Assembly: GCA_965649765.1 (NCBI GenBank)
Contig: OZ287759.1
Location: 23,374,001 to 23,438,000, forward strand
Origin: Bispira polyomma
Taxonomy: Eukaryota
Reading direction: 5' to 3'
Length of the DNA stretch: 64,000 bases
The translations under genes were made by a program, and so were the position numbers. Numbering within the stretch: the stretch's first letter is position 1; every line of letters starts with the position of its first letter. Below the pieces are notes generated by a model, which ran no database searches, was not told the DNA's origin, and saw only the letters and a program-made list of their open reading frames with translations. Positions 240-52,100 of the stretch are shown here, one piece after another.

Positions 240-344
240 TGACACACTCAGCTCCTGTGGAACTGGGTACTTTGCCACTGCCACAAGCCGTACAGGTCTC
301 AAAGTCATCACATACGGTACAGTCTTCCATGGCAGTGCCACAGG
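240..344 (-). CDS. Repeat exon type [35 protein letters not shown] (last exon in window)
   Basis: 105 bp, ag...gtaagt. Downstream intron matches the ones at 6960-7200 and 19160-19398, so the array continues beyond the edge. Confidence 0.88.
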
Positions 345-3300
345 CTTTTAAAACAAAAATTATACATAGAGTCCTGACAATATATTAATGGTAAATGTAT
401 TACATGAAATGCTTGCAACTAATATAACATCAACAACAAAAAATCAGCATCACCTCTTTAGGTTGTATATTCATGTTTTGACATGGATATAGTTGACAGT
501 GTAATAACACTAATGTTAAAACTTCTTCAGTGGTATGATGTTCCCCGGTAGTGCAAATTGTGATCGAAGTCTAAAACAAGGTGCAGTAGTACAGTATGAC
601 TGAAATAGAAAATTTATACTCAATCTATAAAAACCTATGAACATTCAGCGGAGATATTTAGAGGCTACTGTGACTTTAAATTATCTGGAACTAGTAAGTC
701 AGTCTGGTGAAAGTGGAGAGAATATTTTATCTTAATAGATTGCTAAGAGATATCATACAAAGTAAAATTGTTGGTAAATATGAATAGCCGTAAACTTAAG
801 GACAATTAATTTAAATGTAATACAGAATTTGATCATTAGCCATTGGAGGTGTTGAATAAGAGGGGTTATATGAGAGCATGCTTTTGATTTACTTCAGTTT
901 TTTATCTCTTCCTGTCCAATACCATACAGTTGAAAACTGCAATGAGCAAGACACCTTGCAACCAAGGCATTTGCAACAGCAATAAAATTTTCAAATGTGA
1001 GATGGCGATATGTTTTTATAATAGCAGCTTAACAGAAAAATGATAAAAACATGGAGATTGAAAGTGTCTCCCAGATTGTAACATCATTGGCACAAAAATA
1101 CAATTGCAAAGGTTATTTATCTGAAAAATATTTATGTCATTTTCCTCTGTGCTTTCAAAAAGTAGTTTTTCTCTTGATTGAACTTTAATTTCCTAATTTT
1201 TCGATTTCCTAATTTTTCGTTTTCTTATTTCTTAGGTAGTTCAGCTAATTAGCTTGTTTCATTCATATCGATCTGCTAATGCTATTTTTATATTGTATTT
1301 CACATTTTTAATGTGTTTTTTTGATGTGAGACATCCAGTGAAGCCGAACAACAAAATCAATAACCCAATAGAGAAGTAAAAAAAGCATAGCGAAGTTCGT
1401 AATGAAGGATGTGGGGGTGCCAAGGGGGGAAATTTAGGGGATTAATGAGTTTGAAGAGATAAATTTTAAGTGATTTCCTGAACCAAAAAAATGTTTATTG
1501 TAATCTAAACTAAACAGGGAGACTATTCCATAACATAAAGGGTAGCAATTAAGAAAGGTCTGGATCCTGTCCTTGTGGTAGATTTCTATTAAGTTTATTT
1601 GTACTTACTAACACACATGTCTCCTGTAGAACTGGGTACTTTGCTGTCGCTACAAGCCGTACAGGTCTCAAAGTCATCACATGCGGCACAGTCTTCCATT
1701 GCAGTGCCACAGGCTTTTAAAACAAAAAATATACATAGAGTCCTATCAATTTATTAATTGTAAATGTATTACATGAAATGCTTGCCAGTAATATGACATC
1801 AACAACAAAAAATCAGCATCACTTCTTTAGGTTGTATATTCATGTTTTGACATGGATATACTTGACAGTGTAATAACATTACTGTTAAAAGTTCTTCAGT
1901 GTTATGATGTCACCCAGTAATGCCAATTGTGATTAAAGTCTAAAACAAGGTGCAGTAGTACATTATGACTGGAAAACAAACTTTTGTACTTAATCTATAA
2001 CAAGAGGAAAGTGACCTTGCGGTCACAAATCTCGGAGACATGTATCTTTTTCTCAAGCTGTCTACCTAAAAGTATACTAATATTATCTGTCAATGTATAA
2101 GTTACAACCAAAAAAAATCTGTCTACCGGTCTACCTATAACCTAAAATACAATTGTCAATATATAAGTTACGAAAAAGGAAATTATTTGACAACCTTTGA
2201 CAAGTTAAAAAAATTTTTTTTTTTAATTTTTTGATTGAAGGTAATTTTTTATGGTTTAGGGTTTAGGGGAGTTAGCCATCATTCTTTAGCCTATGTATCT
2301 CTTACACTTAAAGTTAGGGTTTAGGTTTAGGGCTTAGGGGAGTTAGTCATGATTCTTTAGCCTAAATATCTGTTACACATAAAGTTAGATATAGTCCCCT
2401 AACCCCTTAAGCCTAAAATAATTTCGACCTGACAGCTTATGTTTCTTAAATAATTAAAAAATTAGTCTACCTGTCGACCTAACTATATTATTATACAGCT
2501 AGTCCATAATTTAAGGATAAGACCCTGACATACCACAGAATACATGCAATATAAAAAAAACCCATGGCTACATTGTTCACACTTACTAATACAAGAAGTG
2601 TTAAAAACAGTATGAACTTACTAACACATTCCGCTCCTGTAGAACTTGTTACTTTACTACTGTCACAAGCTGTACAGGTTTGGTGGTTAGTGCAGAATTA
2701 ATAAGCCAATAGAGAAGTCTAAAAAGCATTGCGAAGGTTGTAAAGAAGGACAGGGGAGCGTACAAGGAGGAAATTAAAGGGGTAAGTGAGGTTAAAGAGA
2801 TAAGTTTTGCTTTTTCCTCAACCCAGAAAGTGTTTCTAGTAATTTGAGCTCAACAGGCAGACTCTTCCATAACATAAGGGCAACAATTTAGAAAGATCTA
2901 GATTCAGCTCTGTTGGTATGTTTTTATTTAGTTTAAATGTACTTACTGACACACTCGGCTCTTGTAGAACTGGGTACTTTGCTGCTGTCACAAGCCGTAC
3001 AGGTGTTGTAGTCAGTGCACATGTTACAGTCTGTCATTGCACTGGCACAGGCTGTGACATAAATAGGCAACACAAAACTATCATGATTAGTATTACTGAA
3101 ACGTTTAATTCATAGCATCCTGTTGATATATCATCCTCAAAGCTACTCATTTTCTGAAAAAGATAGTCCTGCAACAAAACTTTGGTTGTCATTAGTACAC
3201 AATTCATTTAATTTACTTTAATTTTCACCCTTGTATACATGTAGTTAATTATATATTTTAGACTTTAATTAGACTTTAATTTGCAGGATAATTTTCCAAT

Positions 3301-6300
3301 TTGTTTTAATTAAATTTTTTTTTTACAAAAATTATATTGTTGTTTTAAATCATAGTTACAGTGTTGATGCCTTGACAGATATTATCCCTGATACTGACAT
3401 TAGCCTTCAACTGGCATTTAACCTTGACCTGACACCGCTTGACCTGACATTAGAATTGGCTTGTTATTAGACTCGGCTTAATATATACCTTGACCTGGCA
3501 TACACTTATACACTTGACATTAACCTTGACCTGACATCCTTGACCTGACATTAGACTTGGCCTGGCATTATATTTGAGACATTAACCTTCACCTGACATT
3601 AACCTTGACCTAACATCCTTCACCTGACATTAGACTTGACCTGACATCCTTGACCTGACATTAGATTTGACATAGCATTATATTTGAGACATTAACCTTG
3701 ACCTGACATTAGATTTGACCAGACGTTAGACTTAACTTGATATACACCTTGACCTGGCATTATACTTGGCATTAGATTTGACCTTTAAACTTGACTTCAG
3801 TATTTTATACAATTATTAGCGGTCCAATGTTTATACCTGCTGTGACATAAAAGACAAACACAACTTTTCTAATAAACTGAAAAATGGTACCATCATCATA
3901 TATATTACATGTACTTACTTGTTTTCACTGAAGTTTAGGGAAACCTCTATCACTTGTCTTGAGAGTCGTAATCTATGCACTGTTCAATAAGTAATTTCAA
4001 TGCAATCATATAGATAAGCTGACAAAATATTTTTATGCTTGTAAATGTAGATAGCATTTTAACAGCGTCTCCATGGCACTCATCTTGATTCCAGGACTTA
4101 GCTGACAGTTATTGCCATCTCTGGCTTGACATTGACAACAAGAATGTTGAAGCTACTTAGTCATTGTAGAATTGTAATTTGGAAACTTAGGTATCAGACA
4201 GCTGACTTTGTTCTGATGGATCCCTCAAAATAAAGATTTACCCCAACAAGGGACGAATTAGATACAATTTTAATAAGAAGTGTTAAAAACAGTATGAACT
4301 TACTAACACATTCCGCTCCTGTAGAACTGGGTACTTTACTGCTGTCACAAGCTGTACAGGTTTGGTAGTCACTACACGTGTTACAGTCTGTCATCACACT
4401 GTCACATGCTTTAACAAACACAAGATATGTCTTCATATATGTCAAAATCTACTAAATCTAGGTACAATTTCATAATATGACTTTCATTTTCTAATATCTT
4501 AGGTAGTCCAGCGAACAAGATTGCTTCATATATATTAATTAACTGCTTTTGTATATTATATTTTGTATTATTAATATACCATATTGATGCGAGACATCTT
4601 CTATAGTGCAATAACAGAATCAATTAACTAATAAAGAAGTCCTAAAAGCATAGTAAAACTTGTAAAGAAGGATATGGTGTACAGAGAGCAAATTAAGGGG
4701 GTAAGTGAGTTTGAAGAGATACGTTTAAAGTTTTTTCCTAAACCCAGAAAGTGTTTCTAGTGATCTAAGCTCAACAGGGAGCCTATTCCCTATCATAAGG
4801 GCAGCAATTGAGAAAGATATCGATCCAGAATTCTAGGTAGGTTTCTCTTTAGTCGATTTGTACTTACTGACACACTCGGCTCCTGTAGAGCTGGGTACTT
4901 TGCTGCTGTCACAAGCCGTACAGGTGTCAAAGTCATCACACGTGTTACAGTCTGTCATCACACTGGCACAGGCTTTAACAAACACAAGATATGTATTCAT
5001 ATATGTCAAAATCTACTAAATCTAGGTACAATTTCATAATATGACTTTCATTTTCTAATATCTTAGGTAGTCCAGCGAACAAGATTGCTTCATATATAAT
5101 AATTAACTGCTTTTGTATATTATATTTTGCATTATTAATATACCTTACTGATGCGAGACATCTTCTATAGCGCAATAACAGAATCAATTAACTAATAAAG
5201 AAGTCCTAAAAGCATAGTGAAACTTGTAAAGAAGGATATGGTGTACAGAGAGCAAATTAAGGGGGTAAGTGAGTTTGAAGAGATACGTTTAAAGTTTTTT
5301 CCTAAACCTAGAAAGTGTTTCTAGTGATCTAAGCTCAACAGGGAGTCTATTCTCTATCATAAGGGCACCAATTGAGAAAGATATCGATCCAGAATTCTAG
5401 GTAGGTTTCTCTTTAGTCGATTTGTACTTACTGACACACTCGGCTCCTGTAGAGCTGGGTACTTTGCTGCTGTCACAAGCCGTACAGGTGTCAAAGTTAT
5501 CACACGTGTTACAGTCTGTCATCACACTGGCACAGGCTTTAACAAACACAAGATATAACGTCATATATGTCATAGCCTAGGTACATATTTAAAAAAACAT
5601 TTTTAAACTTAAAATTTCTAATTTCTTAGGTAGCTCAGTCAAAAGGCTTGCTTTATACATATTAATCAGGAAATGCTATTTTTAGAATTTTTTTTGTATT
5701 TTGTTTTAAATATATCTTATTGATGTGAGGCATCTTCTAAAGTGCAAAATCACAATCACTTAACCAATAAAGAAGTTCAAAGAGCATAGCAAACATTGTA
5801 AATGAGGATGTTGTGGTGTACAGGGAGGTAATTAAAGGGGTAAGTGACTTTAAAGAGGTAAGGTTTAAGTTTTTCCTGAACCCAGTAAGTACAGGGGGGG
5901 ACAGCAATTCGTGGTGGACAGCATTTCACTATAAATGTGGTTATTACACCTAATCACTGTATAATATTCATTTTAAAGGAATTATTTTCGCATTATAAGA
6001 TTTATATAACATACACATGCCTACACCACAAATATATAGAATACTGTCTGCCTAAATAAATTTTAAATGAATTTAAAGTACCAACACAGCTAAATAAACA
6101 GTAGTACTGCACAAAATTTGAGGTTGATGATTAGACAGTACTAATGATTGGCTATTGGGCTGTATTAGGGTTTCTTTTCTGTTTCTCATATTATGTATCG
6201 TGTACATAAACTATTTCATAATATAATTATTATTGTTAATAAAAGTTATACGTAATATTTTAATCTAAATATTTACTATTGTTTGAAAATGGCGAAATGC

Positions 6301-9300
6301 TGTCCACTTCTAATCTATATTAACCTAGTGACTTTACTTTCTAACTTCTGGTTAAAATTCATCGGAAGTACCTTAATGTATCTAGATACGAGTCAGATTT
6401 ATATGCAATGGAATGACCTCCACAAATTACCAGTTAATTGCCTCAACATTATTTCCTTTTGCTCATATTTGTTAAATTTCCGTGAATTTCAAGCGAATCG
6501 CTATCCCCCCTTGTATTTCCAGTGATCTAATCTCAACAGGAAGACTATTTCATAACATAAGGCAGCAATTGAGAAAGGTCTAGATCCAGCACACCTGGTA
6601 TGTTTTTATTTAGTTTATTTAATTTAGTACTTACTGACACACTCTGCGCCTGTAGAACTGGGTACTTTGCTGCTGTCACAAACCGTACAGGTCTCAAAGT
6701 CATCACATGTGTTACAGTCTGTCATCACACTGGCACAGGCTTTAACAAACACAAGATATAACTTCATATATGCCATTGTCCAGGTACATATTCACAGACA
6801 TTTTAAGACTTTCATTTTATAATTCCATATATACGTAGTTCAGGCAAAAAGCTTACTTCATGCATATTAATCAGCCAATGTTATTTTTGCAATTTTTGTA
6901 TTTTGTTTTAAACATACCTTATTATTGCAAGGCATCATTTAAAATGCAACATCACAATCAATTAACCAATAGGGTAGTCCAAAAAGCATAGCAATGGTTT
7001 TAAGGAAGGATGTGATGGTGTACAGGGATGGAATTAAGGGGTTAAGTGAGTTCAAATAGATAAGCTTTTCCTTAACCCAGAAAGTGTTTCCAGTGATCTA
7101 AGCTCAACAGGGAGACTATCTTATAACATTAGGGCAGCAATTGAGAAAGCTCTAGAACCAGCCTGCTTGGTAGGTTTTTATTAAGTTTATTTGTACTTAC
7201 TGACACACTCAGCTCCTGTGGAACTGGGTACTTTGCCACTGCCACAAGCCGTACAGGTCTCAAAGTCATCACATGTGTTACAGTCTGTCATAACACTGGC
7301 ACAGGCTTTAACAAACACAAGATATAACTTCATATATGCCATTGTCCAGGTACATATTCACAGACATTTTAAGACTTTCATTTTATAATTCCATATATAT
7401 GTAGTTCAGCCAAAAAGCTTACTTCATGCATATTAATCAGCCAATGTTATTTTTGCAATTTTTGTATTTTGTTTTAAACATACCTTATTATTGCAAGGCA
7501 TCATTTAAAGTGCAACATCACAATCAATTAACCAATAGGGTAGTCCAAAAAGCATAGCAATGGTTTTAAGGAAGGATGTGATGGTGTACAGGGATGGAAT
7601 TAAGGGGTTAAGTGAGTTTAAATAGATAAGCTTTTCCTTAACCCAGAAAGTGTTTCCAGTGATCTAAGCTCAACAGAGAGACTATCTTATAACATTATTA
7701 GGGCAGCAATTGAGAAAGCTCTAGAACCAGCCTGCTTGGTAGGTTTTTATTAAGTTTATTTGTACTTACTAACACACATGTCTCCTGTAGAACTGGGTAC
7801 TTTGCTGTTGTCACAAGCCGTACAGGTGTTGTAGTCAGTGCACATGTTACAGTCTGTCATTGCACTGGCACAGGCTGTGACATAAATAGGCAACACAAAA
7901 CTATCATGATTAGTATTACTGAAACATTTAATTCATAGCATCCTGTTGATATATCATCCTCAAAGCTACTCATTTTCTGAAAAAGATAGTCCTGCAACAA
8001 AACTTTGGTTGTCATTAGTACACAATTCATTTAATTTACTTTAATTTTCACTCTTGTATACATGTAGTTAATTATATATTTTAGACTTTAATTAGACTTT
8101 AATTTGCAGGATAATTTTCCAATTTGTTTTAATTAAATTTTTTTTTTACAAAAATTATATTGTTGTTTTAAATCATAGTTACAGTGTTGATGCCTTGACA
8201 CTGATATTATCCCTGACACTGACATTAGCCTTCAACTGGCATTTAACCTTGACCTGACACCGCTTGACCTGACATTAGAATTGGCTTGTTATTAGACTCG
8301 GCTTAATATATACCTTGACCTGGCATACACTTATACACTTGACATTAACCTTGACCTGACATCCTTGACCTGACATTAGACTTGACCTGACATTATATTT
8401 GAGACATTAACCGTGACCTGACATTAACCTTGACCTAACATCCTTCACCTGACATTAGACTTGACCTGACATCCTTGACCTGACATTAGATTTGACATGG
8501 CATTATATTTGAGACATTAACCTTCATCTGACATTAACCTTGACCTAACATCCTTCACCTAACATTAGACTTAACCTGACATCCTTGACCTGACATTAGA
8601 TTTGACATGGCATTATATTTGAGACATTAACCTTGACCTGACATTAGATTTGACCAGACGTTAGACTTAACTTGATATACACCTTGACCTGGCATTATAC
8701 TTGGCATTAGATTTGACCTTTAAACTTGACTTCAGTATTTTATACAATTATTAGCGGTCCAATGTTTATACCTGCTGTGACATAAAAGACAAACACAACT
8801 TTTCTAATAAACTGAAAAATGGTACCATCATCATATATATTACATGTACTTACTTGTTTTCACTGAAGTTTAGGAAAACCTCTATCACTTGTCTTGAGAG
8901 TCGTAATCTATGCACTGTTCAATAAGTAATTTCAATGCAATCATATAGATAAGCTGACAAAATATTTTTATGCTTGTAAATGTAGATAGCATTTTAACAG
9001 CGTCTCCATGGCACTCATCTTGATTCCAGGACTTAGCTGACAGTTATTGCCATCTCTGGCTTGACATTGACAACAAGAATGTTGAAGCTACTTAGTCATT
9101 GTAGAATTGTAATTTGGAAACTTAGGTATCAGACAGCTGACTTTGTTCTGATGGATCCCTCAAAATAAAGATTTACCCCAACAAGGGATGAATTAGATAC
9201 AATTTTAATAAGAAGTGTTAAAAACAGTATGAACTTACTAACACATTCCGCTCCTGTAGAACTGGGTACTTTACTGCTGTCACAAGCTGTACAGGTTTGG

Positions 9301-12300: not shown

Positions 12301-15300
12301 AATAAAAGTTATACGTAATATTTTAATCTAAATATTTACTATTGTTTGAAAATGGCGAAATGCTGTCCACTTCTAATCTATATTAACCTAGTGACTTTAC
12401 TTTCTAACTTCTGGTTAAAATTCATCGGAAGTACCTTAATGTATCTAGATACGAGTCAGATTTATATGCAATGGAATGACCTCCACAAATTACCAGTTAA
12501 TTGCCTCAACATTATTTCCTTTTGCTCATATTTGTTAAATTTCCGTGAATTTCAAGCGAATCGCTATCCCCCCTTGTATTTCCAGTGATCTAATCTCAAC
12601 AGGAAGACTATTTCATAACATAAGGCAGCAATTGAGAAAGGTCTAGATCCAGCACACCTGGTATGTTTTTATTTAGTTTATTTAATTTAGTACTTACTGA
12701 CACACTCTGCGCCTGTAGAACTGGGTACTTTGCTGCTGTCACAAACCGTACAGGTCTCAAAGTCATCACATGTGTTACAGTCTGTCATCACACTGGCACA
12801 GGCTTTAACAAACACAAGATATAACTTCATATATGCCATTGTCCAGGTACATATTCACAGACATTTTAAGACTTTCATTTTATAATTCCATATATACGTA
12901 GTTCAGCCAAAAAGCTTACTTCATGCATATTAATCAGCCAATGTTATTTTTGCAATTTTTGTATTTTGTTTTAAACATGTCTTATTATTGCAAGGCATCA
13001 TTTAAAATGCAACATCACAATCAATTAACCAACAGGGTAGTCCAAAAAGCATAGCAATGGTTTTAAGGAAGGATGTGATGGTGTACAGGGATGGAATTAA
13101 GGGGTTAAGTGAGTTTAAATAGATAAGCTTTTCCTTAACCCAGAAAGTGTTTCCAGTGATCTAAGCTCAACAGGGAGACTATCTTATAACATAAGGCAGC
13201 AATTGAGAAAGGTCTAGATCCAGCACACCTGGTATGTTTTTATTTAGTTTATTTAATTTAGTACTTACTGACACACTCTGCGCCTGTAGAACTGGGTACT
13301 TTGCTGCTGTCACAAACCGTACAGGTCTCAAAGTCATCACATGTGTTACAGTCTGTCATAACACTGGCACAGGCTTTAACAAACACAAGATATAACTTCA
13401 TATATGCCATTGTCCAGGTACATATTCACAGACATTTTAAGACTTTCATTTTATAATTCCATATATATGTAGTTCAGCCAAAAAGCTTACTTCATGCATA
13501 TTAATCAGCCAATGTTATTTTTGCAATTTTTGTATTTTGTTTTAAACATACCTTATTATTGCAAGGCATCATTTAAAGTGCAACATCACAATCAATTAAC
13601 CAATAGGGTAGTCCAAAAAGCATAGCAATGGTTTTAAGGAAGGATGTGATGGTGTACAGGGATGGAATTAAGGGGTTAAGTGAGTTTAAATAGATAACTT
13701 TTCCTTAACCCAGAAAGTGTTTCCAGTGATCTAAGCTCAACAGAGAGACTATCTTATAACATTATTAGGGCAGCAATTGAGAAAGCTCTAGAACCAGCCT
13801 GCTTGGTAGGTTTTTATTAAGTTTATTTGTACTTACTAACACACATGTCTCCTGTAGAACTGGGTACTTTGCTGTCGCTACAAGCCGTACAGGTCTCAAA
13901 GTCATCACATGCGGTACAGCTTTCCATTGCAGTGCCACAGGCTTTTAAAACAAAAATTATACAAAGAGTCCTATCAATTTATTAATTGTAAATGTATTAC
14001 ATGAAATGCTTGCCACTAATATGACATCAACAACAAAAAATCAGCATCACTTCTTTAGGTTGTATATTCATGTTTTGACATGGATATACTTGACAGTGTA
14101 ATAACATTAATGTTAAAAGTTCTTCAGTGTTATGATGTCACCCAGTAATGCCAATTGTGATTAAAGTCTAAAACAAGGTGCAGTAGTACATTATGACTGG
14201 AAAACAAACTTTTGTACTTAATCTATAACAAGAGGAAAGTGACCTTGCGGTCACAAATCTCGGAGACATGTATCTTTTTCTCAAGCTGTCTACCTAAAAG
14301 TAAACTAATATTATCTGTCAATGTATAAGTTACAACCAAAAAAAATCTGTCTACCGGTCTACCTATAACCTAAAATACAATTGTCAATAGATAAGTTACA
14401 AAAAAGGAAATTATTTGACAACCTTTGACAAGTTAAAAAATTTTTTTTTTAATTTTTTGATTGAAGGTAATTTTTTATGGTTTAGGGTTTAGGGGAGTTA
14501 GCCATCATTCTTTAGCCTATGTATCTCTTACACTTAAAGTTAGGGTTTAGGTTTAGGGCTTAGGGGAGTTAGTCATGATTCTTTAGCCTAAATATCTGTT
14601 ACACATAAAGTTAGATATAGTCCCCTAACCCCTTAAGCCTAAAATAATTTCGACCTGACAGCTTATGTTTCTTAAATAATTAAAAAATTAATCTACCTGT
14701 CGACCTAACTATATTATTATACAGCTAGTCCATAATTTAAGGATAAGATCCTGACATACCACAGAATACATGCAATATAAAAAATACCCATGGCTACATT
14801 GTTCACACTTACTAATACAAGTGGCTCCTGTAGAACTTGTTACTTTACTACTGTCACAAGCTGTACAGGTTTGGTGGTTAGTGCAGAATTAATAAGCCAA
14901 TAGAGAAGTCTAAAAAGCATTGCGAAGGTTGTAAAGAAGGACAGGGGAGCGTACAAGGAGGAAATTAAAGGGGTAAGTGAGGTTAAAGAGATAAATTTTG
15001 CTTTTTCCTCAACCCAGAAAGTGTTTCTAGTAATTTGAGCTCAACAGGCAGACTCTTCCATAACAATAGCAATTTAGAAAGATCTAGATTCAGCTCTGTT
15101 GGTATGTTTTTATTTAGTTTAAATGTACTTACTGACACACTCGGCTCCTGTAGAACTGGGTACTTTGCTGCTGTCACAAGCCGTACAGGTGTTGTAGTCA
15201 GTGCACATGTTACAGTCTGTCATTGCACTGGCACAGGCTGTGACATAAATAGGCAACACAAAACTATCATGATTAGTATTACTGAAACATTTAATTCACA

Positions 15301-18300
15301 GCATCCCGTTGATATATCATCCTCAAAGCTACTCATTTTCTGAAAAAGATAGTCCTGCAACAAAACTTTGGTTGTCATTAGTACACAATTCATTTAATTT
15401 ACTTTAATTTTCACACATATATACATGTAGTTAATTATATATTTTAGACTTCAATTAGACTTTAATTTGCAGGATAATTTTCCAATTTGTTTTAATTAAA
15501 TTTTTTTTTTACAAAAATTATATTGTTGTTTGCTGTTTTAAATCATAGTTACAGTGTTGATGCCTTGACACTGATATTATCCCTGACACTGACATTAGCC
15601 TTCAACTGGCATTTAACCTTGACCTGACACCGCTTGACCTGACATTAGAATTGGCTTGTTATTAGACTCGGCTTAATATATACCTTGACCTGGCATACAC
15701 TTATACACTTGACATTAACCTTGACCTGACATCCTTGACCTGACATTAGACTTGACCTGGCATTATATTTGAGACATTAACCTTGACCTGACATTAACCT
15801 TGACCTAACATCCTTCACCTGACATTAGACTTGACCTGACATCCTTGACCTGACATTAGATTTGACATGGCATTATATTTGAGACATTAACCTTGACCTG
15901 ACATTAGATTTGACCAGACGTTAGACTTAACTTGATATACACCTTGACCTGGCATTATACTTGGCATTAGATTTGACCTTTAAACTTGACTTCAGTATTT
16001 TATACAATTATTAGCGGTCCAATGTTTATACCTGCTGTGACATAAAAGACAAACACAACTTTTCTAATAAACTGAAAAATGGTACCATCATCATATATAT
16101 TACATGTACTTACTTGTTTTCACTGAAGTTTAGGAAAACCTCTATCACTTGTCTTGAGAGTCGTAATCTATGCACTGTTCAATAAGTAATTTCAATGCAA
16201 TCATATAGATAAGCTGACAAAATATTTTTATGCTTGTAAATGTAGATAGCATTTTAACAGCGTCTCCATGGCACTCATCTTGATTCCAGGACTTAGCTGA
16301 CAGTTATTGCCATCTCTGGCTTGACATTGACAACAAGAATGTTGAAGCTACTTAGTCATTGTAGAATTGTAATTTGGAAACTTAGGTATCAGACAGCTGA
16401 CTTTGTTCTGATGGATCCCTCAAAATAAAGATTTACCCCAACAAGGGATGAATTAGATACAATTTTAATAAGAAGTGTTAAAAACAGTATGAACTTACTA
16501 ACACATTCCGCTCCTGTAGAACTGGGTACTTTACTGCTGTCACAAGCTGTACAGGTTTGGTAGTCACTACACGTGTTACAGTCTGTCATCACACTGTCAC
16601 ATGCTTTAACAAACACAAGATATGTCTTCATACATGTCAAAATCTACTAAATCTAGGTACAATTTCATAATATGACTTTCATTTTCTAATATCTTAGGTA
16701 GTCCAGCGAACAAGATTGCTTCATATATATTAATTAACTGCTTTTGTATATTATATTTTGTATTATTAATATACCATATTGATGCGAGACATCTTCTATA
16801 GTGCAATAACAGAATCAATTAACCAATAAAGAAGTCCAAAAAGCATAGTGAAACTTGTAAAGAAGGATATGGTGTACAGAGAGCAAATTAAGTGGGTAAG
16901 TGAGTTTGAAGAGATACATTTAAAGTTTTTTCCTAAACCCAGAAAGTGTTTCTAGTGATCTAAGCTCAACAGGGAGCCTATTCCATATCATGAGGGCAGC
17001 AATTGAGAAAGATATCGATCCAGAATTCTAGGTAGGTTTCTCTTTAGTCGATTTGTACTTACTGACACACTCGGCTCCTGTAGAGCTGGGTACTTTGCTG
17101 CTGTCACAAGCCGTACAGGTGTTAAAGTCATCACACGTGTTACAGTCTGTCATCACACTGGCACAGGCTTTAACAAACACAAGATATGTATTCATATATG
17201 TCAAAATCTACTAAATCTAGGTACAATTTCATAATATGACTTTCATTTTCTAATATCTTAGGTAGTCCAGCGAACAAGATTGCTTCATATATAATAATTA
17301 ACTGCTTTTGTATATTATATTTTGCATTATTAATATACCTTATTGATGTGAGACATCTTCTATAGCGCAATAACAGAATCAATTAACTAATAAAGAAGTC
17401 CTAAAAGCATAGTGAAACTTGTAAATAAGGATATGGTGTACAGAGAGCAAATTAAGGGGGTAAGTGAGTTTGAAGAGATACGTTTAAAGTTTTTTCCTAA
17501 ACCCAGAAAGTGTTTCTAGTGATCTAACCCCAACAGTGAGTCTATTCCATATCATAAGGGCAGCAATTGAGAAAGATATCAATCCAGAACTCTAGGTAGG
17601 TTTCTCTTTAGTCGATTTGTACTTACTGACACACTCGGCTCCTGTAGAACTGGGTACTTTGCTGCTGTCACAAACCGTACAGGTGTCAAAGTCATCACAT
17701 GTGGTACAGTCTGTCATCACACTGGCACAGGCTTTAACAAACACAAGATATAACTTCATATATGCCATAGCCTAGGTACATATTTAAACAAACATTTTAA
17801 AACTTGAAATTTCTAATTTCTTAGGTAGCTCAGTCAAAAGGCTTGCTTTATACATTTTAATCAGGAAATGCTATTTTTAGAATTTTTTTTGTATTTTGTT
17901 TTAAATATATCTTATTGATGTGAGGCATCTTCTAAAGTGCAAAATCACAATCACTTAACCAATAAAGAAGTTCAAAGAGCATAGCAAATATTGTAAATGA
18001 GGATGTTGTGGTGTACAGGGAGGTAATTAAAGGGGTAAGTGACTTTAAAGAGGTAAGGTTTAAGTTTTTCCTGAACCCAGTAAGTACAGGGGGGGACAGC
18101 AATTCGTGGTGGACAGCATTTCACTATAAATGTGGTTATTACACCTAATCACTGTATAATATTCATTTTAAAGGAATTATTTTCGCATTATAAGATTTAT
18201 ATAACATACACATGCCTACACCACAAATATATAGAATACTGTCTGCCTAAATAAATTTTAAATGAATTTAAAGTACCGACACAGCTAAATAAACAGTAGT

Positions 18301-21300
18301 ACTGCACAAAATTTAAGGTTGATGATTAGACAGTACTAATGATTGGCTATTGGGCTGTACTGGGGTTTCTTTTCTGTTTCTCATATTATGTATCGTGTAC
18401 ATAAACTATTTCATAATATAATTATTATTGTTAATAAAAGTTATACGTAATATTTTAATCTAAATATTTACTATTGTTTGAAAATGGCGAAATGCTGTCC
18501 ACTTCTAATCTATATTAACCTAGTGACTTTACTTTCTAACTTCTGGTTAAAATTCATCGGAAGTACCTTAATGTATCTAGATACGAGTCAGATTTATATG
18601 CAATGGAACGACCTCCACAAATTACCAGTTAATTGCCTCAACATTATTTCCTTTTGCTCATATTTGTTAAATTTCCGTGAATTTCAAGCGAATCGCTATC
18701 CCCCCTTGTATTTCCAGTGATCTAATCTCAACAGGAAGACTATTTCATAACATAAGGCAGCAATTGAGAAAGGTCTAGATCCAGCACACCTGGTATGTTT
18801 TTATTTAGTTTATTTAATTTAGTACTTACTGACACACTCTGCGCCTGTAGAACTGGGTACTTTGCTGCTGTCACAAACCGTACAGGTCTCAAAGTCATCA
18901 CATGTGTTACAGTCTGTCATAACACTGGCACAGGCTTTAACAAACACAAGATATAACTTCATATATGCCATTGTCCAGGTACATATTCACAGACATTTTA
19001 AGACTTTCATTTTATAATTCCATATATACGTAGTTCAGCCAAAAAGCTTACTTCATGCATATTAATCAGCCAATGTTATTTTTGCAATTTTTGTATTTTG
19101 TTTTAAACATACCTTATTATTGCAAGGCATCATTTAAAGTGCAACATCACAATCAATTAACCAATAGGGTAGTCCAAAAAGCATAGCAATGGTTTTAAGG
19201 AAGGATGTGATGGTGTACAGGGATGGAATTAAGGGGTTAAGTGAGTTTAAATAGATAAGCTTTTCCTTAACCCAGAAAGTGTTTCCAGTGATCTAAGCTC
19301 AACAGAGAGACTATCTTATAACATTATTAGGGCAGCAATTGAGAAAGCTCTAGAACCAGCCTGCTTGGTAGGTTTTTATTAAGTTTATTTGTACTTACTG
19401 ACACACTCAGCTCCTGTGGAACTGGGTACTTTGCCATTGCCACAAGCCGTACAGGTCTCAAAGTCATCACATGTGGTACAGTCTTCCATGGCAGTGCCAC
19501 AGGCTTTTAAAACAAAAATTATACATAGAGTCCTGTCAATTTATTAATTGTAAATGTATTACATGAAATGCTTGCCAGTAATATGACATCAACAACAAAA
19601 AATCAGCATCACTTATTTAGGTTGTATATTCATGTTTTGACATGGATATACTTGACAGTGTAATAACATTAATGTTAAAACTTCTTCAGTGGTATGATGT
19701 TCCCCGGTAGTGCAAACTGTGATCGAAGTCTAAAACAAGGTGCAGTAGTACATTATGACTGAAATAGAAACTTTTATACTTAATTTATAAAAACCTATGA
19801 ACATTCAGCGGAGATATTTAGAGGCTACTGTGACTTTAAATTATCTGGAACCAGTAAGTCGGTCTGGTGAAAGTGGAGAGAATATTTTATCTTAACAGAT
19901 TGCTAAGAGATATCATACAAAGTAAAATTGTTGGTAAATATAAATAGCCGTAAACTTGATGACAATTAATTTAAATGTAATACAGAATTTGATCGTTAGC
20001 CGTTGGAGGTGTTGAATAAGAAGGGTTATATGAGAGCATGCTTTTGATTTACTTAAATTTTTATCTCTTCCTGTCCAATACCATACAGTTGAAAACTGCA
20101 ATGAGCAAGACACCTTGCAACCAAGGCATTTGCAACAGCAATAAAATTTTCAAATGTGAGATGGCGATATGTTTTTATAATAGCAGCTTAACAGAAAAAT
20201 GACAAAAACATGGAGATTGAAAGTGTCTCCCAGATTGTAACATCATTGGCACAAAAATACAATTGCAAAGGATATTTATCTGAAAAATATTTATGTCATT
20301 TTCCTCTGTGCTTTCGAAAAGTAGTTTTTCTCTTGATTGAACTTTAACTTCCTAATTTTTCGATTTCCTAATTTTTCGTTTTCTTATTTCTTAGGTAGTT
20401 CAGCTAATTAGCTTGTTTCATTCATATCGATCTGCTAATGCTATTTTTATATTGTATTTCACATTTTTAATGTGTTTTTTTGATGTGAGACATCCAGTAA
20501 AGCCGAACAACAAAATCAATAACCCAATAGAGAAGTAAAAAAAGCATAGCGAAGTTCGTAATGAAGGATGTGGGGGTGCCAAGGGGGGAAATTTAGGGGA
20601 TTAATGAGTTTGAAGAGATAAATTTTAAGTGATTTCCTGAACCAAAAAAATGTTTATTGTAATCTAAACTAAACAGGGAGACTATTCCATAACATAAAGG
20701 GTAGCAATTAAGAAAGGTCTGGATCCTGTCCTTGTGGTAGATTTCTATTAAGTTTATTTGTACTTGATTTCTATTAAGTTTATTTGTACTTACTAACACA
20801 CATGTCTCCTGTAGAACTGGGTACTTTGCTGTCGCTACAAGCCATACAGGTCTCAAAGTCATCACATGCGGTACAGTCTTCCATTGCAGTGCCACAGGCT
20901 TTTAAAACAAAAAATATACAGAGTCCTATCAATTTATTAATTGTAAATGTATTACATGAAATGCTTGCCAGTAATATGACATCAACAACAAAAAATCAGC
21001 ATCACTTCTTTAGGTTGTATATTCATGTTTTGACATGGATATACTTGACAGTGTAATAACATTACTGTTAAAAGTTCTTCAGTGTTATGATGTCACCCAG
21101 TAATGCCAATTGTGATTAAAGTCTAAAACAAGGTGCAGTAGTACATTATGACTGGAGAACAAACTTTTGTACTTAATCTATAACAAGAGGAAAGTGACCT
21201 TGCGGTCACAAATCTCGGAGACATGTATCTTTTTCTCAAGCTGTCTACCTAAAAGTATACTAATATTATCTGTCAATGTATAAGTTACAACCAAAAAAAA

Positions 21301-24300
21301 TCTATCTACTGGTCTACCTATAACCTAAAATACAATTGTCAATATATAAGTTACAAAAAAGGAAATTATTTGACAACCTTTGACAAGTTAAAAAATTTTT
21401 TTTTTAATTTTTTGATTGAAGGTAATTTTTTATGGTTTAGGGTTTAGGGGAGTTAGCCATCATTCTTTAGCCTATGTATCTCTTACACTTAAAGTTAGGG
21501 TTTAGGTTTAGGGCTTAGGGGAATTAGCCACCATTCTATAGCCTAAATATCTGTTACACATAAAGTTAGATATAGTCCCCTAACCCCTTAAGCCTAAAAT
21601 AATTTCGACCTGACAGCTTATGTTTCTTAAATAATTAAAAAATTAGTCTACCTGTCGACCTAACTATATTATTATACAGCTAGTCCATAATTTAAGGATA
21701 AGATCCTGACATACCACAGAATACATGCAATATAAAAAAAAACCCATGGCTACATTGTTCACACTTACTAATACAAGTGGCTCCTGTAGAACTTGTTACT
21801 TTACTACTGTCACAAGCTGTACAGGTTTGGTGGTTAGTGCAGAATTAATAAGCCAATAGAGAAGTCTAAAAAACATTGCGAAGGTTGTAAAGAAGGACAG
21901 GGGAGCGTACAAGGAGGAAATTAAAGGGGTAAGTGAGGTTAAAGAGATAAGTTTTGCTTTTTCCTCAACCCAGAAAGTGTTTCTAGTAATTTGAGCTCAA
22001 CAGGCAGACTCTTCCATAACATAAGGGCAACAATTTAGAAAGATCTAGATTCAGCTCTGTTGGTATGTTTTTATTTAGTTTAAATGTACTTACTGACACA
22101 CTCGGCTCTTGTAGAACTGGGTACTTTGCTGCTGTCACAAGCCGTACAGGTGTTATAGTCAGTGCACATGTTACAGTCTGTCATTGCACTGGCACAGGCT
22201 GTGACATAAATAGGCAACACAAAACTATCATGATTAGTATTACTGAAACATTTAATTCACAGTATCCCGTTGATATATCATCCTCAAAGCTACTCATTTT
22301 CTGAAAAAGATAGTCCTGCAACAAAACTTTGGTTGTCATTAGTACACAATTCATTTAATTTACTTTAATTTTCACACATATATACATGTAGTTAATTATA
22401 TATTTTAGACTTCAATTAGACTTTAATTTGCAGGATAATTTTCCAATTTGTTTTAATTAAATTTTTTTTTTACAAAAATTATATTGTTGTTTGCTGTTTT
22501 AAATCATAGTTACAGTGTTGATGCCTTGACACTGATATTATCCCTGACACTGACATTAGCCTTCAACTGGTATTTAACCTTGACCTGACACCGCTTGACC
22601 TGACATTAGAATTGGCTTGTTATTAGACTCGGCTTAATATATACCTTGACCTGGCATACACTTATACACTTGACATTAACCTTGACCTGACATCCTTGAC
22701 CTGACATTAGACTTGACCTGGCATTATATTTGAGACATTAACCTTGACCTGACATTAACCTTGACCTAACATCCTTCACCTGACATTAGACTTGACCTGA
22801 CATCCTTGACCTGACATTAGATTTGACATGGCATTATATTTGAGACATTAACCTTCACCTGACATTAACCTTGACCTAACATCCTTCACCTAACATTAGA
22901 CTTAACCTGACATCCTTGACCTGACATTAGATTTGACATGGCATTATATTTGAGACATTAACCTTGACCTGACATTAGATTTGACCAGACGTTAGACTTA
23001 ACTTGATATACACCTTGACCTGGCATTATACTTGGCATTAGATTTGACCTTTAAACTTGACTTCAGTATTTTATACAATTATTAGCGGTCCAATGTTTAT
23101 ACCTGCTGTGACATAAAAGACAAACACAACTTTTCTAATAAACTGAAAAATGGTACCATCATCATATATATGACATGTACTTACTTGTTTTCACTGAAGT
23201 TTAGGAAAACCTCTATCACTTGTCTTGAGAGTCGTAATCTATGCACTGTTCAATAAGTAATTTCAATGCAATCATATAGATAAGCTGACAAAATATTTTT
23301 ATGCTTGTAAATGTAGATAGCATTTTAACAGCGTCTCCATGGCACTCATCTTGATTCCAGGACTTAGCTGACAGTTATTGCCATCTCTGGCTTGACATTG
23401 ACAACAAGAATGTTGAAGCTACTTAGTCATTGTAGAATTGTAATTTGGAAACTTAGGTATCAGACAGCTGACTTTGTTCTGATGGATCCCTCAAAATAAA
23501 GATTTACCCCAACAAGGGATGAATTAGATACAATTTTAATAAGAAGTGTTAAAAACAGTATGAACTTACTAACACATTCTGCTCCTGTAGAACTGGGTAC
23601 TTTACTGCTGTCACAAGCTGTACAGGTTTGGTAGTCACTACACGTGTTACAGTCTGTCATCACACTGTCACATGCTTTAACAAACACAAGATATGTCTTC
23701 ATATATGTCAAAATCTACTAAATCTAGGTACAATTTCATAATATGACTTTCATTTTCTAATATCTTAGGTAGTCCAGCGAACAAGATTGCTTCATATATA
23801 TTAATTAACTGTTTTTGTATATTATATTTTGCATTATTAATATACCATATTGATGCGAGACATCTTCTATAGTGCAATAACAGAATCAATTAACTAATAA
23901 AGAAGTCCTAAAAGCATAGTGAAACTTGTAAAGAAGGATATGGTGTACAGAGAGCAAATTAAGGGGGTAAGTGAGTTTGAAGAGATACGTTTAAAGTTTT
24001 TTCCTAAACCCAGAAAGTGTTTCTAGTGATCTAAGCTCAACAGGGAGCCTATTCCATATCATGAGGGCAGCAATTGAGAAAGATATCGATCCAGAATTCT
24101 AGGTAGGTTTCTCCTTAGTTGATTTGTACTTACTGACACACTCGGCTCCTGTAGAGCTGGGTACTTTGCTGCTGTCACAAGCCGTACAGGTGTCAAAGTC
24201 ATCACACGTGTTACAGTCTGTCATCACACTGGCACAGGCTTTAACAAACACAAGATATAACGTCATATATGCCATAGCCTAGGTACATATTTAAACAAAC

Positions 24301-27300
24301 ATTTTAAAACTTGAAATTTCTAATTTCTTAGGTAGCTCAGTCAAAAGGCTTGCTTTATACATATTAATCAGGAAATGCTATTTTTAGAATTTTTTTTGTA
24401 TTTTGTTTTAAATATATCTTATTGATGTGAGGCATCTTCTAAAGTGCAAAATCACAATCACTTAACCAATAAAGAAGTTCAAAGAGCATAGCAAACATTG
24501 TAAATGAGGATGTTGTGGTGTACAGGGAGGTAATTAAAGGGGTAAGTGACTTTAAAGAGGTAAGGTTTAAGTTTTTCCTGAACCCAGGAATTATTTCCAG
24601 TGATCTAATCTCAACAGAAAGACTATTTCATAACATAAGGCAGCAATTGAGAAAGGTCTAGATCCAGCACACCTGGTATGTTTTTATTTAGTTTATTTAA
24701 TTTAGTACTTACTGACACACTCTGCGCCTGTAGAACTAGGTACTTTGCTGCTGTCACAAACCGTACAGGTGTCAAAGTCATCACATGTGTTACAGTCTTC
24801 CATGGCAGTGCCACAGGCTTTTAAAACAAAAATTATACATAGAGTCCTGTCAATTTATTAATTGTAAATGTATTACATGAAATGCTTGCAACTAATATAA
24901 CACCAACAACAAAAAATCAGCATCACTTCTTTAGCTTGTATATTCATGTTTTGACATGGATATACTTGACAGTGTAATAACACTAATGTTAAAACTTGTA
25001 TGATGTTCCCCGGTAGTGCAAATTGTAATCGAAATCTAAAACAAGGTGCAGTAGTACATTATAACTGAAATACAAACTTTTATACTTAATCTATAAAAAC
25101 CTATGAACATTCAGCGGAGATATTTAGAAGCTACTGTGACTTTAAATTATCTGGAACCAGTAAGTCGGTCTGGTAAAGGTGGAGAGAATATTTTATCTTG
25201 ATAGATTGCTGAGAGATATCATACAAAGTGAAATTGTTGGTAAATATGAATAGCCGTAAACTTGATGACAATAAATTTAAATGTAATACAGAATTTGATC
25301 ATTACCCATTGGAGGTGTTGAATAAGAGGGGTTATATGAGAGCATGCTTTTGATTTACTTTAGTTTTTATATCTTTCTGTCCAATACCATACAGTTGAAA
25401 ACTGCAATGAGCAAGACACCTTGCAACCAAGGCATTTACAACAGCAATAGAATTTTTAAATGTGAGATGTGTTTTTAAAGTAGCAGCATTAGCAAACCAA
25501 AAATAATTACAACATGGTTATTAATGATAGCTCTGAGATTTGGACATCATTCACAAGAAAATGCTATTGCGGAGGAGATTTACATAAAAAACTTTTTACA
25601 CATTTTTCTTTTGTGCTTTCGAGCCAATTAGTAAAACAACATTTTCCTCTTGATTTTACTTTAATGTCCCAATTATTTAATTCCGTACTTTTTCATTTTC
25701 TAATTTCTAAGGTTGTTCAGACAATAAGCATGCTTCATACATATTAATTAGCCAATGTTATTTTTATATTTATTGTTATGTAATTTTAATGTGCCTTATT
25801 GATGTGAGGCATCTTCTAAAGCACAGCAACAGAATCATTTAACCAATAGAGAAGTCTAAAAAACATAACAGAGGTTGTAACACGGGATTAAGGGTTAAGC
25901 AAGTTTAAACAAGGTAGGAGAAGGTGTTTCAAATGATCCAAGCTCAACAGGGAGACTATTCCATAACACAACGGCTGCAATTTAGAAAGCTCTAGATCCA
26001 GCCCTCTTGGTAGGTTTATATTTAGTTTTGCAACCCTAGCCGAACATATTAAATTAAAGAATGAATAAAGGGAGCCTTAACCCAAATTACAACCACAAGA
26101 ACGCTCCTATTCAAAATGTAACTTCTTATGTTTAGCAGGGAACCATTCAGTGAAAAACAGAGATCCCGCCATTTTGTTTTGCACAATGTGTCACAAAGAC
26201 ATATGAAAGCTTGGAGAGATAAAATAATGAACATTAACATTCCTTTAGTGATAGACAACGGCTATGGCTAGGAATACAGGTCCTTATTTGGCTCACATTT
26301 TGTACACGATTAGAGGAGCCAGCCCATTCACTGTATATAGCAGTGGTAAAAGCATTTTTCCTGATTATAAATAGGACTATATTAGTTGCATACATTTCAC
26401 ATTTTCTGTCCATAAATATCCGCCAACTGCCATTACGATCCAACCTATATTATGAGCACCCTTAAAAATAATAAATGTTGTTTATTTAAATATTGTTGTT
26501 TCCTGTTGCAAAATGTTAGTAATATTGCCCAGTAACACACTCTACTCCAGTAGATTTGGATATTTAAATTTTTGGTCACAAACTGGGGGTCGCGATGTCC
26601 TAATGGTTGTAAGTGTTTGCTTTAATATCACTATCCCATTATTTCTGGGAGGTCAAGATCCCCACAACCGTTAAAAAGTCCATTTGCTGAAGCTGTAGTA
26701 AACTCAAGTCTAACAACCACATTGTACCTTTTATGTGTTTTCTTCCATTTGATAATAATAATAGAAACATTGATATAGCGCAACATTGATCAGAATCCTC
26801 TAATGCGCTGATTTCCAAAAGGGGATTGCATAGATTGTCACCCAGTCAGCGCCAACCAGGGAGTAACTAAGGTCGAGGATACACCAGTCTTAACAAGTGA
26901 GTCTTGAGCTGGCTTCGAAAACCTGATATTGTCTGCTGTGATCTTACCTTTTGTGGCAACCTTTTCCATTGTACCAGTGTAGCAACAGCAAATACACAAT
27001 ACCTGGATCCGCCTATGCTTCAGATACTTCATGTAAGTTATTGGTTTTTAGTACAAAATCCTACACAATAAGGATTTTTTTGTGTGCAGTTCCTTTTGAA
27101 CATGTTTTTGATTTGAAACCTGAAGGACAAGGGTGGCAATTCTCCTATGGCTAAATATGTTGAAAGTGACATATAACTCAGATTCAAATTATTGTCATTG
27201 AATATAATTGTACAACGTTGATGGTCAGTACTATCTGCTACTGTATTGGAGCATGGTTTTTTTGCCTGCTAGAAACACTAGATATTAACAACCAAACAAA

Positions 27301-42841: not shown

Positions 42842-42864
42842 CTTTTATAGAAATTCGCCCCCAC
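42842..42864 (-). promoter_or_regulatory. Candidate TATA box (TATAAAAG, 42849-42842) with adjacent GC-box-like gtgggggcgaa
   Basis: Consensus TATA on the gene strand ~300 bp upstream of the ATG, in a locally GC-richer patch. Confidence 0.45.
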
Positions 42865-50900: not shown

Positions 50901-51671
50901 GAAGTAAAAAATAGATTTCTTCCGAATTTTAAACAACTGTAACTAGCACTGGTTTCGCCCACCAGTAAATCTACTTGATATGACCTACACAATGTGTTGA
51001 CATCGATGTTAAACACAATTCAATCAATCAATGCCCACTGTGACACAAAACGTGGTGAAAGTGTTGTTGAAACCAAACTATAATAAATTAATTTAACATG
51101 AATTCGATCTTCACATATTGGTCAAATCTGCTGATTACTTGGGCACTGACCAAAATTTTGTTATTATGTAGTTCTATTGTATTGTGGTTTTCTAATGTGC
51201 CTTATTGACGCCAGGCATCTTCTAAATAATTGTCTTTATCAGAATCAATAAACCTGTAATCATGATCATAATACACAGTCAGGTGGTCCTCAATCAATAG
51301 GCAAAGGCATGTTCACACCTTTTACAAGAATGTTATATTCCAAATGTAAGAGTCTTATATCAAATAATGTTCACAAATAATTGAAGCAGCCTTTGAAAGC
51401 TCAGCCACAAGTACCCAACATCACACGATTATTTTGTTTATCAAGTAACAGTTTAGATCATTCATATTAAAAGTTGACAAAAGTTTTGTGCAAAGTGTTT
51501 TATATGGACTGTGAGAGTAACAATGATACCACAGCTTTATTTAATATAAGAAATAGTTGTTAATTATTGAATTAACTGGACATGACCTCACCATATTGGA
51601 TTTGGTGTATGAACACCACTGAATAACACTTAATAATTATAATATAATAATTTATAATAATTGAAACATTT

Positions 51672-52100
51672 ATAAAGCACCAATTTGATGAGAACTTCAA
51701 ATGAGCACTGATTTCCAAAAAGGTGAAAATCCAAAGGTAAGCAAAGGTCGTTACCAGATAAGCAACCACCAAGGGAAGAGTTGCTAAGGAGGGGGTAGGC
51801 CAGTCTGAAAAGGTAAGTTTTTAGATGGCTTCTGAAACTTGAGATTTTATCCTGTGATCTATCAGTGTGTGGGAGTTTGTTCCATTCAACAGGAGCTGCA
51901 ACAGCAAAGCTGTGCCTGCCGATTTTTCTGTGTAGTCGTGTTGAGGAGATGGATTGGCAGTTTCCATGGGTAAGGCTACTAGATTTGATAAGTGAGGACA
52001 AATAAGGAGGTTGGCTGAGTTTGATAGTTTTGAACACAAGAAGGTTGTATTTGAAAAGAACGCCCGTTTGACAGGTAGCCAGTGGTATTTGTTTAAGTAA
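51672..52100 (-). mobile_element. L2/CR1-like LINE 3' fragment
   Basis: PPYLSSLI...IGRHSFAVAAPVEWNKLP...FRSHLKTYLFRLAYP, with HWLP upstream. Confidence 0.85.

Follow-up and report, generated by a model that had tools for sequence, protein, structure and literature searches.

The window analysed here, 64,000 nucleotides of the forward strand of contig OZ287759.1 from Bispira polyomma, carries on its minus strand, at 240..24817, an array of 28 intact 105-nt exons, each encoding a six-cysteine repeat, which runs from 24817-24713 down to 344-240. Read on the minus strand, exons 1-10 begin at 24817, 24238, 23674, 22198, 20898, 19503, 18934, 17731, 17167 and 16603, exons 11-20 at 15237, 13941, 13373, 12802, 11599, 11035, 10471, 9907, 9343 and 7874, and exons 21-28 at 7305, 6739, 5536, 4972, 4408, 3051, 1713 and 344. 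All are bounded by AG..GT, open and in phase 1-1, as an earlier, sequence-only reading had stated in describing 28 phase 1-1 exons with lengths divisible by 3. The exons comprise 20 distinct DNA sequences and encode 17 distinct peptides, the number of peptides given in that reading; its claims that peptide changes are limited to positions between the cysteines and that CxxC motifs are rebuilt at the junctions also hold, the six cysteines being invariant in 28/28 exons and C-V-T-C being restored at each exon junction within the array. The exons of the cassette that it placed at 240-24817 are real, but the array does not end at 240: outside the window, beyond that position, there are 4 further array-type exons and 7 divergent repeat exons. 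Together with a first, divergent CxxC repeat exon at 30125..30229 (minus strand), which is the last constant exon ahead of the array and is kept in homologous loci of another assembly, the repeat exons total 40 (28 in the window's array, 11 beyond 240 and 1 ahead at 30229-30125). Three dead, 5'-truncated exon copies also lie within the array on the minus strand, at 2622..2687 (donor retained, in-frame acceptor very weak at 0.9 bits), 14824..14878 and 21780..21834.

The array sits inside a 45-exon minus-strand gene model, predicted from sequence, that extends 15 kb beyond the window. The coding part of the predicted first exon (42514..42546) supplies the ATG and the opening 11 residues of a hydrophobic signal peptide and ends at a phase 0 donor; exon 2 (36318..36366; 49 nt, phase 0-1; acceptor 11.3 bits, donor 11.4 bits) supplies the end of the signal peptide. 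A stretch of N occupies 41608-41818 of the window. Head exon A (34799..34945; 147 nt, phase 1-1) encodes the first third of the head and has homologous exons in paralogues and in L038 (26/47 identical), and head exon B (31395..31694; 300 nt, phase 1-1; 47% to P0002) encodes the remainder of the head, which is putatively a beta-trefoil. The GPI-type last exon, also on the minus strand, starts near G000:C12:23358583, outside the window. A candidate exon of 26 nt at 39439 was omitted from the model, as including it would cause a frameshift, and a donor-like site within head exon B, giving a 185-nt form, was rejected because homologues read through it.

With all exons joined, the model predicts a protein of ~1,611 aa with a putative signal peptide, a ~150-aa head, 40 six-cysteine CxxC repeats and a GPI-type tail. 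Counted on the joined exons, the model is open throughout, is hydrophobic only at both ends, contains 116 CxxC motifs and is acidic (237 D+E versus 47 K+R). In this gene, its C6 paralogue, L038, L040, L041, L042 and P0010, hydropathy and inspection indicate a signal-peptide-like hydrophobic N terminus and a small-residue spacer followed by a terminal hydrophobic tail with no cytoplasmic part; the protein is probably GPI-anchored, i.e. lipid-anchored, at the cell surface.

The head (~140-150 aa) resembles beta-trefoil lectins of the ricin B or AbfB type in being beta-rich and in its C...C...W-Y-F ending, although it has no profile match above a curated cut-off and no PDB sequence match, and sugar binding is putative. 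Profile and homology searches were run exon by exon, not on the joined model. A profile of head exon A searched against the head alignment recovered just the shared first third, a word search with the head alignment, which covers short proteins only, found no match, and two AlphaFold models of the head were of low confidence (pLDDT 46.6 and 50.7), with three fold searches returning no match. The head's neighbours in the Atlas, by language-model features, lie at 0.92-0.93 and all belong to the trefoil group, and the AbfB profile matches weakly (E 0.0094; 16.5 bits, under the cut-off of 22.8). These observations suggest a beta-trefoil-like head.

Paralogues share the same design, with one repeat per phase 1-1 exon, their repeats being 32/32 distinct with a mean identity of 37%; further paralogues, known from partial sequence, lie on C5, C7, C13 and elsewhere on C12. 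In ENA ERZ22147071, the closest homologues combine a head with 3-4 repeat exons and a hydrophobic tail, and P0010, a 328-aa record, has a signal, a head, four repeats in series and a tail. P0010 is a distant relative and its record is intronless, which limits its weight for series splicing. A literature search found no description of this family.

With respect to better known surface proteins, the ciliate GPI-anchored immobilisation antigens may be comparable CxxC proteins with a signal peptide and a membrane anchor. Giardia VSPs (PF03302), of which a single gene is active at a time, with switching, likewise form a multigene family with a signal peptide, many CxxC motifs and a C-terminal membrane anchor, and P0010's best word-search matches carry PF03302; however, P0010 itself matches PF03302 weakly (E 0.012; 15 bits versus a curated cut-off of 31.4) and single exons have no meaningful match in Pfam, PF03302 included. 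VSPs are defined by a transmembrane segment followed by a CRGKA tail (PMC2996952), whereas the last exon of this animal gene, which has one intron per repeat and a distinct N-terminal head, ends hydrophobic, without CRGKA or a cytoplasmic tail. In Giardia, vspC5 carries a 105-bp repeat in >20 copies, the number of which varies between alleles (PMC2996952).

The array donors read GTAAGT in 28/28 exons, in agreement with the sequence-only reading, and its description of the acceptors as weak-looking is fair because AAG acceptors, which serve 24/28 array exons (GTTAAAG in 18 and TTAAAAG in 6, the other 4 being GTCACAG), occur in 0/52 paralogue repeat exons. Use of an in-frame acceptor at +21, giving an 84-nt form, as the main site was rejected; its scores lie between -2.4 and 3.7 bits, and a cysteine would be lost. 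That any subset of exons can be joined in frame is correct as frame logic. Phase 1-1 is, however, common to the head exons and all paralogue repeat exons, including the ~35 all-different ones of one paralogue; on this comparative evidence, symmetry of phase is ancestral throughout the family's module exons. The array introns are 458-1371 nt long and all GT-AG, and the exons are 3n, which together leave no steric, spliceosome-type (U2/U12) or NMD/frame-based means of exclusion.

Nested duplications within the array have carried introns along, as a 6.1-kb block at 96% identity, a 3.6-kb one at 98% and 564-bp units, and the nearest units of the window exons are 91-100% identical. Similarity of flanking introns parallels that of the exons, the order of units recurs in blocks and chimeric exons are present, patterns by which the 17 variants are accounted for through block duplications and crossovers taking introns along. 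The variants have a mean identity of 81%, with five identical copies and a dN/dS of 0.52. None of 85 parsimony steps (0/85) falls at the 12 first or second positions of the Cys codons (P about 2e-5 under uniform placement), and the array exons have no indels and no loss of cysteine, whereas the intron types differ from one another by 3-22 indels per 400 nt. The variation is conservative and carries a purifying signal.

We consider it likely that the gene encodes a long GPI-type surface protein whose stalk was lengthened by DNA duplication, with its exons mostly joined in series and its 17 variants forming no repertoire. It would belong to a marine-invertebrate family of secreted surface proteins with a probable GPI anchor, in which a small, perhaps lectin-like head is held off the membrane by what we infer to be a rod of disulfide-stapled CxxC repeats, each encoded by its own phase 1-1 exon. 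Repeated unequal crossing-over would have multiplied exon-plus-intron units and multi-exon blocks, such that a stalk of about 4-10 units reached 40; the main transcript most likely carries the exons in series, encoding ~1,600 aa, and the variants would reflect past duplications plus mild drift, with selection retaining cysteines, frame and splice sites. The stalk would act as a spacer, perhaps in mucus, cuticle, adhesion or a microbe-facing coat. The sequence-only reading had put forward a splice-diversified cassette, holding one constitutive long rod to be at least as likely; we rank the rod as better supported, based on the family design and the pattern of duplication. The frame logic and the unusual acceptors of the cassette proposal stand, but the phase is ancestral and the variants are explained by duplication, and some exon skipping within the array may occur. 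Counting against the series-rod reading are the AAG acceptors in 24/28 exons and the inverted repeats flanking the array, which pair strongly on paper.

Compatible with this series rod, and offered as an alternative source of diversity, is variation in length at the genomic level, i.e. a copy-number-variable macro-repeat whose alleles differ and are each spliced constitutively, a proposal to which we give somewhat better than even odds. In human LPA, near-identical exon-plus-intron units of kringle IV type 2 have been multiplied by unequal crossing-over, lengthening the protein in frame, although the module is unrelated and here the unit has one exon and several unit types are interleaved. Units with 99-100% identity and the chimeric exons imply recent or ongoing unequal crossing-over; on the other hand, three public runs differ from unique sequence at 0-1 positions over 400-920 nt, and may derive from the source animal.

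The introns also contain a high-copy repeat. An L2/CR1-like retroposon tail, so assigned by its decayed reading frame, lies antisense to the gene at 29715..29937 (plus strand), ~190 nt past the donor of exon 30229-30125, and is complementary to copies found within introns of the array. Further antisense copies occur between head exons A and B (34509..34772, plus strand) and downstream, near G000:C12:23367000. A sense copy follows 24/28 array exons (for example, 23830..24120, minus strand), and ~26 sense copies lie in the array introns; because their position past the donor is fixed, they appear to have been co-duplicated from one ancestral insertion. One clean contig covering 29149-29932 in three public runs confirms the antisense copy as real DNA; over 24001-30000 these runs, the three returned by a search for RNA of this species and none of them RNA, gave DNA-like contigs, with no splice joints among those listed.

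Pairing of the antisense copy past exon 30229-30125, or of the one downstream, with one or other of the ~26 sense copies could loop out runs of exons and leave a sizeable fraction of the mRNAs with shortened stalks, yielding a leaky stalk of variable length through an insertion accident that is possibly tolerated or used, a proposal that we view as possible but unlikely. The antisense/sense layout is observed, the computed duplexes of full copies (-177 to -214 kcal/mol versus -85 for shuffles) are well below shuffles, weak AAG acceptors favour skipping and the symmetric phases would leave all products in frame. Complementarity is, however, only ~72%, with the longest perfect stems being 11-18 nt, and the antisense copy forms duplexes almost as stable with unrelated genomic copies (-161 to -180 kcal/mol) and with its nearest partner, a sense copy located in the same intron at 25786..26027 (minus strand; -204 kcal/mol), which loops out no exon. 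Genome-wide, at least 2,578 candidate members of the repeat family were counted, at a density of roughly one per 15-25 kb in the DNA examined, and an inverted copy is therefore expected by chance; the antisense copy is absent from homologous loci. Inverted Alu pairs, in which members of a single retroposon family are similarly opposed, show enrichment near skipped exons, above all where the acceptor is weak, in a study that considered pairs up to 5 kb from an exon (PMC13019027), whereas here one antisense copy faces ~26 co-duplicated sense copies at 5-30 kb. The search for docking/selector complementarity suggested by the sequence-only reading did find a complementary element after the last constant exon, but it is a generic, non-conserved repeat and not specific. 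Since unrelated copies pair with it about equally and homologous loci lack it, any skipping by looping out would be accidental. It is doubtful that the retroposon tail, co-multiplied with the exons and faced by an opposed copy, constitutes a self-assembled docking/selector system in which pairing with copy k skips exons 1-k to give a ladder of stalk lengths.

Inflation of the array by misassembly, or a decaying, untranslated expansion, is very unlikely: some units are 100% identical and dead partial copies are present, but there are five or six unit types with 18-34% intron divergence, none of the 20 distinct exon sequences is disrupted or has lost a cysteine, and public-run contigs map to the edge of the array and the unique sequence beside it. 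The analogy with SpTransformer (185/333), drawn in the sequence-only reading for element-shuffled diversity, fails, since those two-exon genes, with their elements inside exon 2, have element patterns that are genomic, not spliced (PMC5491942); like the present family, they comprise multiple genes whose extracellular products, made by a marine invertebrate, are rich in repeats, but here the model has 45 exons and the repeats are Cys-rich. A selected, mutually exclusive or combinatorial cassette making a recognition repertoire, as in Dscam1, is extremely improbable, for although tandem homologous, frame-preserving exons with weak acceptors lie amid constant exons and a complementary intronic element lies past the upstream constant exon, at the docking position, no exclusion device was found among these GT-AG introns and 3n exons, the variable part is the stalk and not the head, each exon is a whole chainable repeat unit in nearly identical copies (dN/dS <1) and not one of a set of diversified alternatives, and the element is one copy of an abundant retroposon; in Dscam, by contrast, docking pairs stand out by their conservation and by compensatory changes (PMC4691838).

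The overall results point to what is most likely an animal surface protein with a CxxC stalk like those of protist coats, made ~tenfold longer through exon duplication. The family is unnamed and its head domain new, whereas the mechanism of lengthening is already known, and the results will be useful in annotating the family and in studying how stalk length evolves. Were a ladder of skipping tied to the inverted retroposon to prove true, the locus would offer a natural test for the origin of the competing RNA pairings by which exon arrays are governed. A self-assembled docking/selector, if true, would mean that a Dscam-like pairing layout can arise from one step, transposon insertion plus tandem duplication, and that one gene could give a ladder of in-frame stalk lengths under a lectin-like head.

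The 28-exon array is real. We consider it probable that it encodes part of a GPI-type surface protein's stalk, one lengthened by duplication and spliced constitutively. In a genome of 1.035 Gb (75 contigs), with the window at G000:C12:23374001-23438000, it runs on the minus strand from 24817 to 240 as 28 AG..GT exons, each of 105 nt, open and in phase 1-1, whose 20 distinct DNA sequences encode 17 peptides (mean identity 81%, minimum 59%; five identical copies) with six invariant cysteines. C-V-T-C is restored at every junction inside the array, and all 28 donors are GTAAGT. Acceptors ending in AAG precede 24 of the 28 exons, versus 0 of 52 paralogue repeat exons, and score 3.0-7.6 bits against a mean of 10.7 (sd 4.0) with a matrix trained on family exons; they derive from one or two ancestral sites, not from 24 independent events. 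The anatomy described in the sequence-only reading, i.e. symmetric exons of length divisible by three, 17 cysteine-preserving peptides, rebuilt CxxC junctions, uniform gtaagt donors and mostly weak-looking acceptors, is thus borne out. An intronic minisatellite with nested 14/17/31-nt units (3486-3762, 8336-8697, 15680-15957 and 22641-23028) travelled along in four block duplications, and its 110-nt unit is present 1.8 or 2.8 times.

The gene opens upstream of the array, also on the minus strand, with a start exon at 42546-42514 and exon 2 at 36366-36318; two head exons, A (34945-34799) and B (31694-31395), come next, ahead of a divergent repeat exon at 30229-30125. Past the window start the gene continues with four further exons of the array type and seven divergent repeat exons, and closes with an exon that ends hydrophobic, without a cytoplasmic tail. 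The 45-exon model, joined locally and searched against databases exon by exon, encodes 1,611 aa (15% Cys, 116 CxxC, strongly acidic) with hydrophobic segments confined to its two ends, by inspection a predicted signal peptide and a GPI-type tail. Intron 1 holds 211 N (41608-41818, gap or mask), a TATA-like box seen by eye lies on the minus strand at 42842-42850, ~300 nt ahead of the predicted ATG, and intronic tandem repeats with ~39-nt and ~66-nt units separate divergent downstream repeat exons (L001:4420-5330 and L002:7100-8600, both in fetched stretches of this genome). Searches of Pfam and of PDB sequences gave the head no match that passes the cut-off, and its structure models are of poor quality; the head of P0010, a 328-aa database record, has a weak AbfB match (E 0.0094), and its neighbours by Atlas features, at 0.92-0.93, belong without exception to beta-trefoil families. 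A lectin-like beta-trefoil is a reasonably likely, putative assignment for the head, which we treat as a lead.

Self-comparison of the window reveals nested direct duplications, introns included, with blocks of 6.1 kb (96%) and 3.6 kb (98%) and 564-bp units. Flanking introns sort the units into five or six types that recur in blocks, exon likeness rises with that of the introns, and several exons, e.g. 7874 and 7305, combine the 5' part of one type with the 3' part of another. The nearest units are 91-100% identical while introns of different types are 18-34% apart, which points to growth that is long repeated and recent or ongoing. Purifying selection acts on the exons (dN/dS = 0.52), with 0 of 85 steps at the 12 Cys first and second codon positions and no indels, versus 3-22 per 400 nt of intron, and broken copies that have lost the 5' half are decaying; this pattern demonstrates translation of most unit types and is compatible with constitutive and alternative use alike.

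One rival explanation is that inverted repeats accidentally loop out exons, giving leaky stalk length in a sizeable share of mRNAs. At 29937-29715, ~190 nt beyond the last constant exon's donor, lies an antisense repeat with ~72% complementarity to an element found after 24 of the 28 exons; we read the element as the 3' end, now decayed, of an L2/CR1-type retroposon. Full copies pair at -177 to -214 kcal/mol, versus -85 for shuffles. Such skipping is possible because inverted Alu pairs can promote it, chiefly at weak acceptors (PMC13019027). However, the antisense repeat pairs nearly as strongly with unrelated copies on other chromosomes (-161 to -180 kcal/mol) and at -204 kcal/mol with a sense copy that shares its intron, the longest perfect stem of the duplexes is 11-18 nt, and the repeat, for which the genome yields at least 2,578 candidates (~75% identity; ~1 per 15-25 kb of fetched DNA), is missing from the homologous loci. 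We regard loop-out in a sizeable share of mRNAs as unlikely, and a true stalk-length ladder driven by the antisense repeat as slightly less likely still. Further decayed LINE-type 3' fragments lie at 51630-52037, 56689-57003 and 62225-62551. Among the sequencing runs found for the locus, none is RNA. Three unlabelled ones, which may stem from the source animal itself, gave DNA-like contigs over 24001-30000 that match the unique parts of the window almost exactly, one clean contig covering the antisense repeat; the contigs listed there contain no splice joints and have no bearing on splicing or polymorphism.

Steric hindrance, spliceosome mismatch and frame-based exclusion, all established mechanisms, are ruled out by array introns of 458-1371 nt, uniformly GT-AG, and by 3n exons. 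The array shares with the Dscam1 cluster only its first, anatomical feature, tandem homologous frame-preserving exons between constant exons; a search for docking/selector complementarity in the introns, as the earlier reading proposed, did find a real complementary element, but not the conservation and compensatory change that identify Dscam docking sites (PMC4691838), and a selected Dscam-like repertoire is very hard to credit. With an ancestral symmetric phase, intron-bearing duplications and no exclusion device, the splice-diversified cassette first proposed is unlikely. SpTransformer differs in mechanism, since its two-exon genes are not alternatively spliced (PMC5491942). Giardia VSPs and ciliate coat proteins likewise combine a signal, a CxxC rod and an anchor, and in Giardia vspC5 a 105-bp repeat varies in copy number between alleles (PMC2996952), but VSP membership was rejected, as the gene lacks the CRGKA tail and the Pfam score of its relative P0010 falls below cut-off.

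The gene belongs to a family of which our literature search found no description. A search with one repeat exon scored 150 matches, spread over at least seven chromosome-scale contigs of the same genome, and one with head exon B scored 17 (E up to 0.002). Paralogues on C6 and C11 have phase 1-1 head exons and phase 1-1 repeat exons that each encode a single CxxC repeat, and a GPI-type end was found in the C6 paralogue; symmetric phase is thus the ancestral family state, nothing special to the array and uninformative on it. The plus-strand C11 gene has ~35 repeat exons, of which the 32 of 105 nt all differ (mean identity 37%). The C6 paralogue at G000:C6:73305833-73336400 (L007-L010) carries a head domain at its start and, on the same strand, another (exons A+B) that follows ~seven repeat exons close to the GPI-type end. 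Paired head exons 16 kb apart occur at C13:32.28-32.29 Mb and C7:16.13-16.14 Mb, tandem near-identical multi-exon gene copies with internal 6.4-kb repeats at G000:C7:24.29-25.04 Mb (equal scores at 24.48, 24.63, 24.88 and 25.01 Mb), and a convergent pair whose last repeat exons are close paralogues at G000:C11:8045000-8120000 (L014-L021).

A large search returned 11 relatives; of those looked up, most come from ENA assembly ERZ22147071 and one from a marine biofilm sample. P0010 is intronless, with a signal, head, four serial repeats and tail, and is probably the spliced mRNA of a distant relative. In the closest ERZ22147071 loci a head is followed by 3-4 repeat exons and by a hydrophobic tail, with 26/47 identities in head exon A, 47% in exon B and a clearly homologous first repeat exon. 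In the closest, the second repeat exon (L038:13622-13720) lacks its 3' end and donor and reads into a stop, so that the reading frame of the gene is kept only by skipping this exon. In evolutionary terms, the array resembles exon-bearing macro-repeats, e.g. LPA kringle IV-2. Another ERZ22147071 homologue carries its own duplication, a near-identical repeat exon pair at L044:14677 and 18032, which suggests that stalk growth via duplication recurs in the family.
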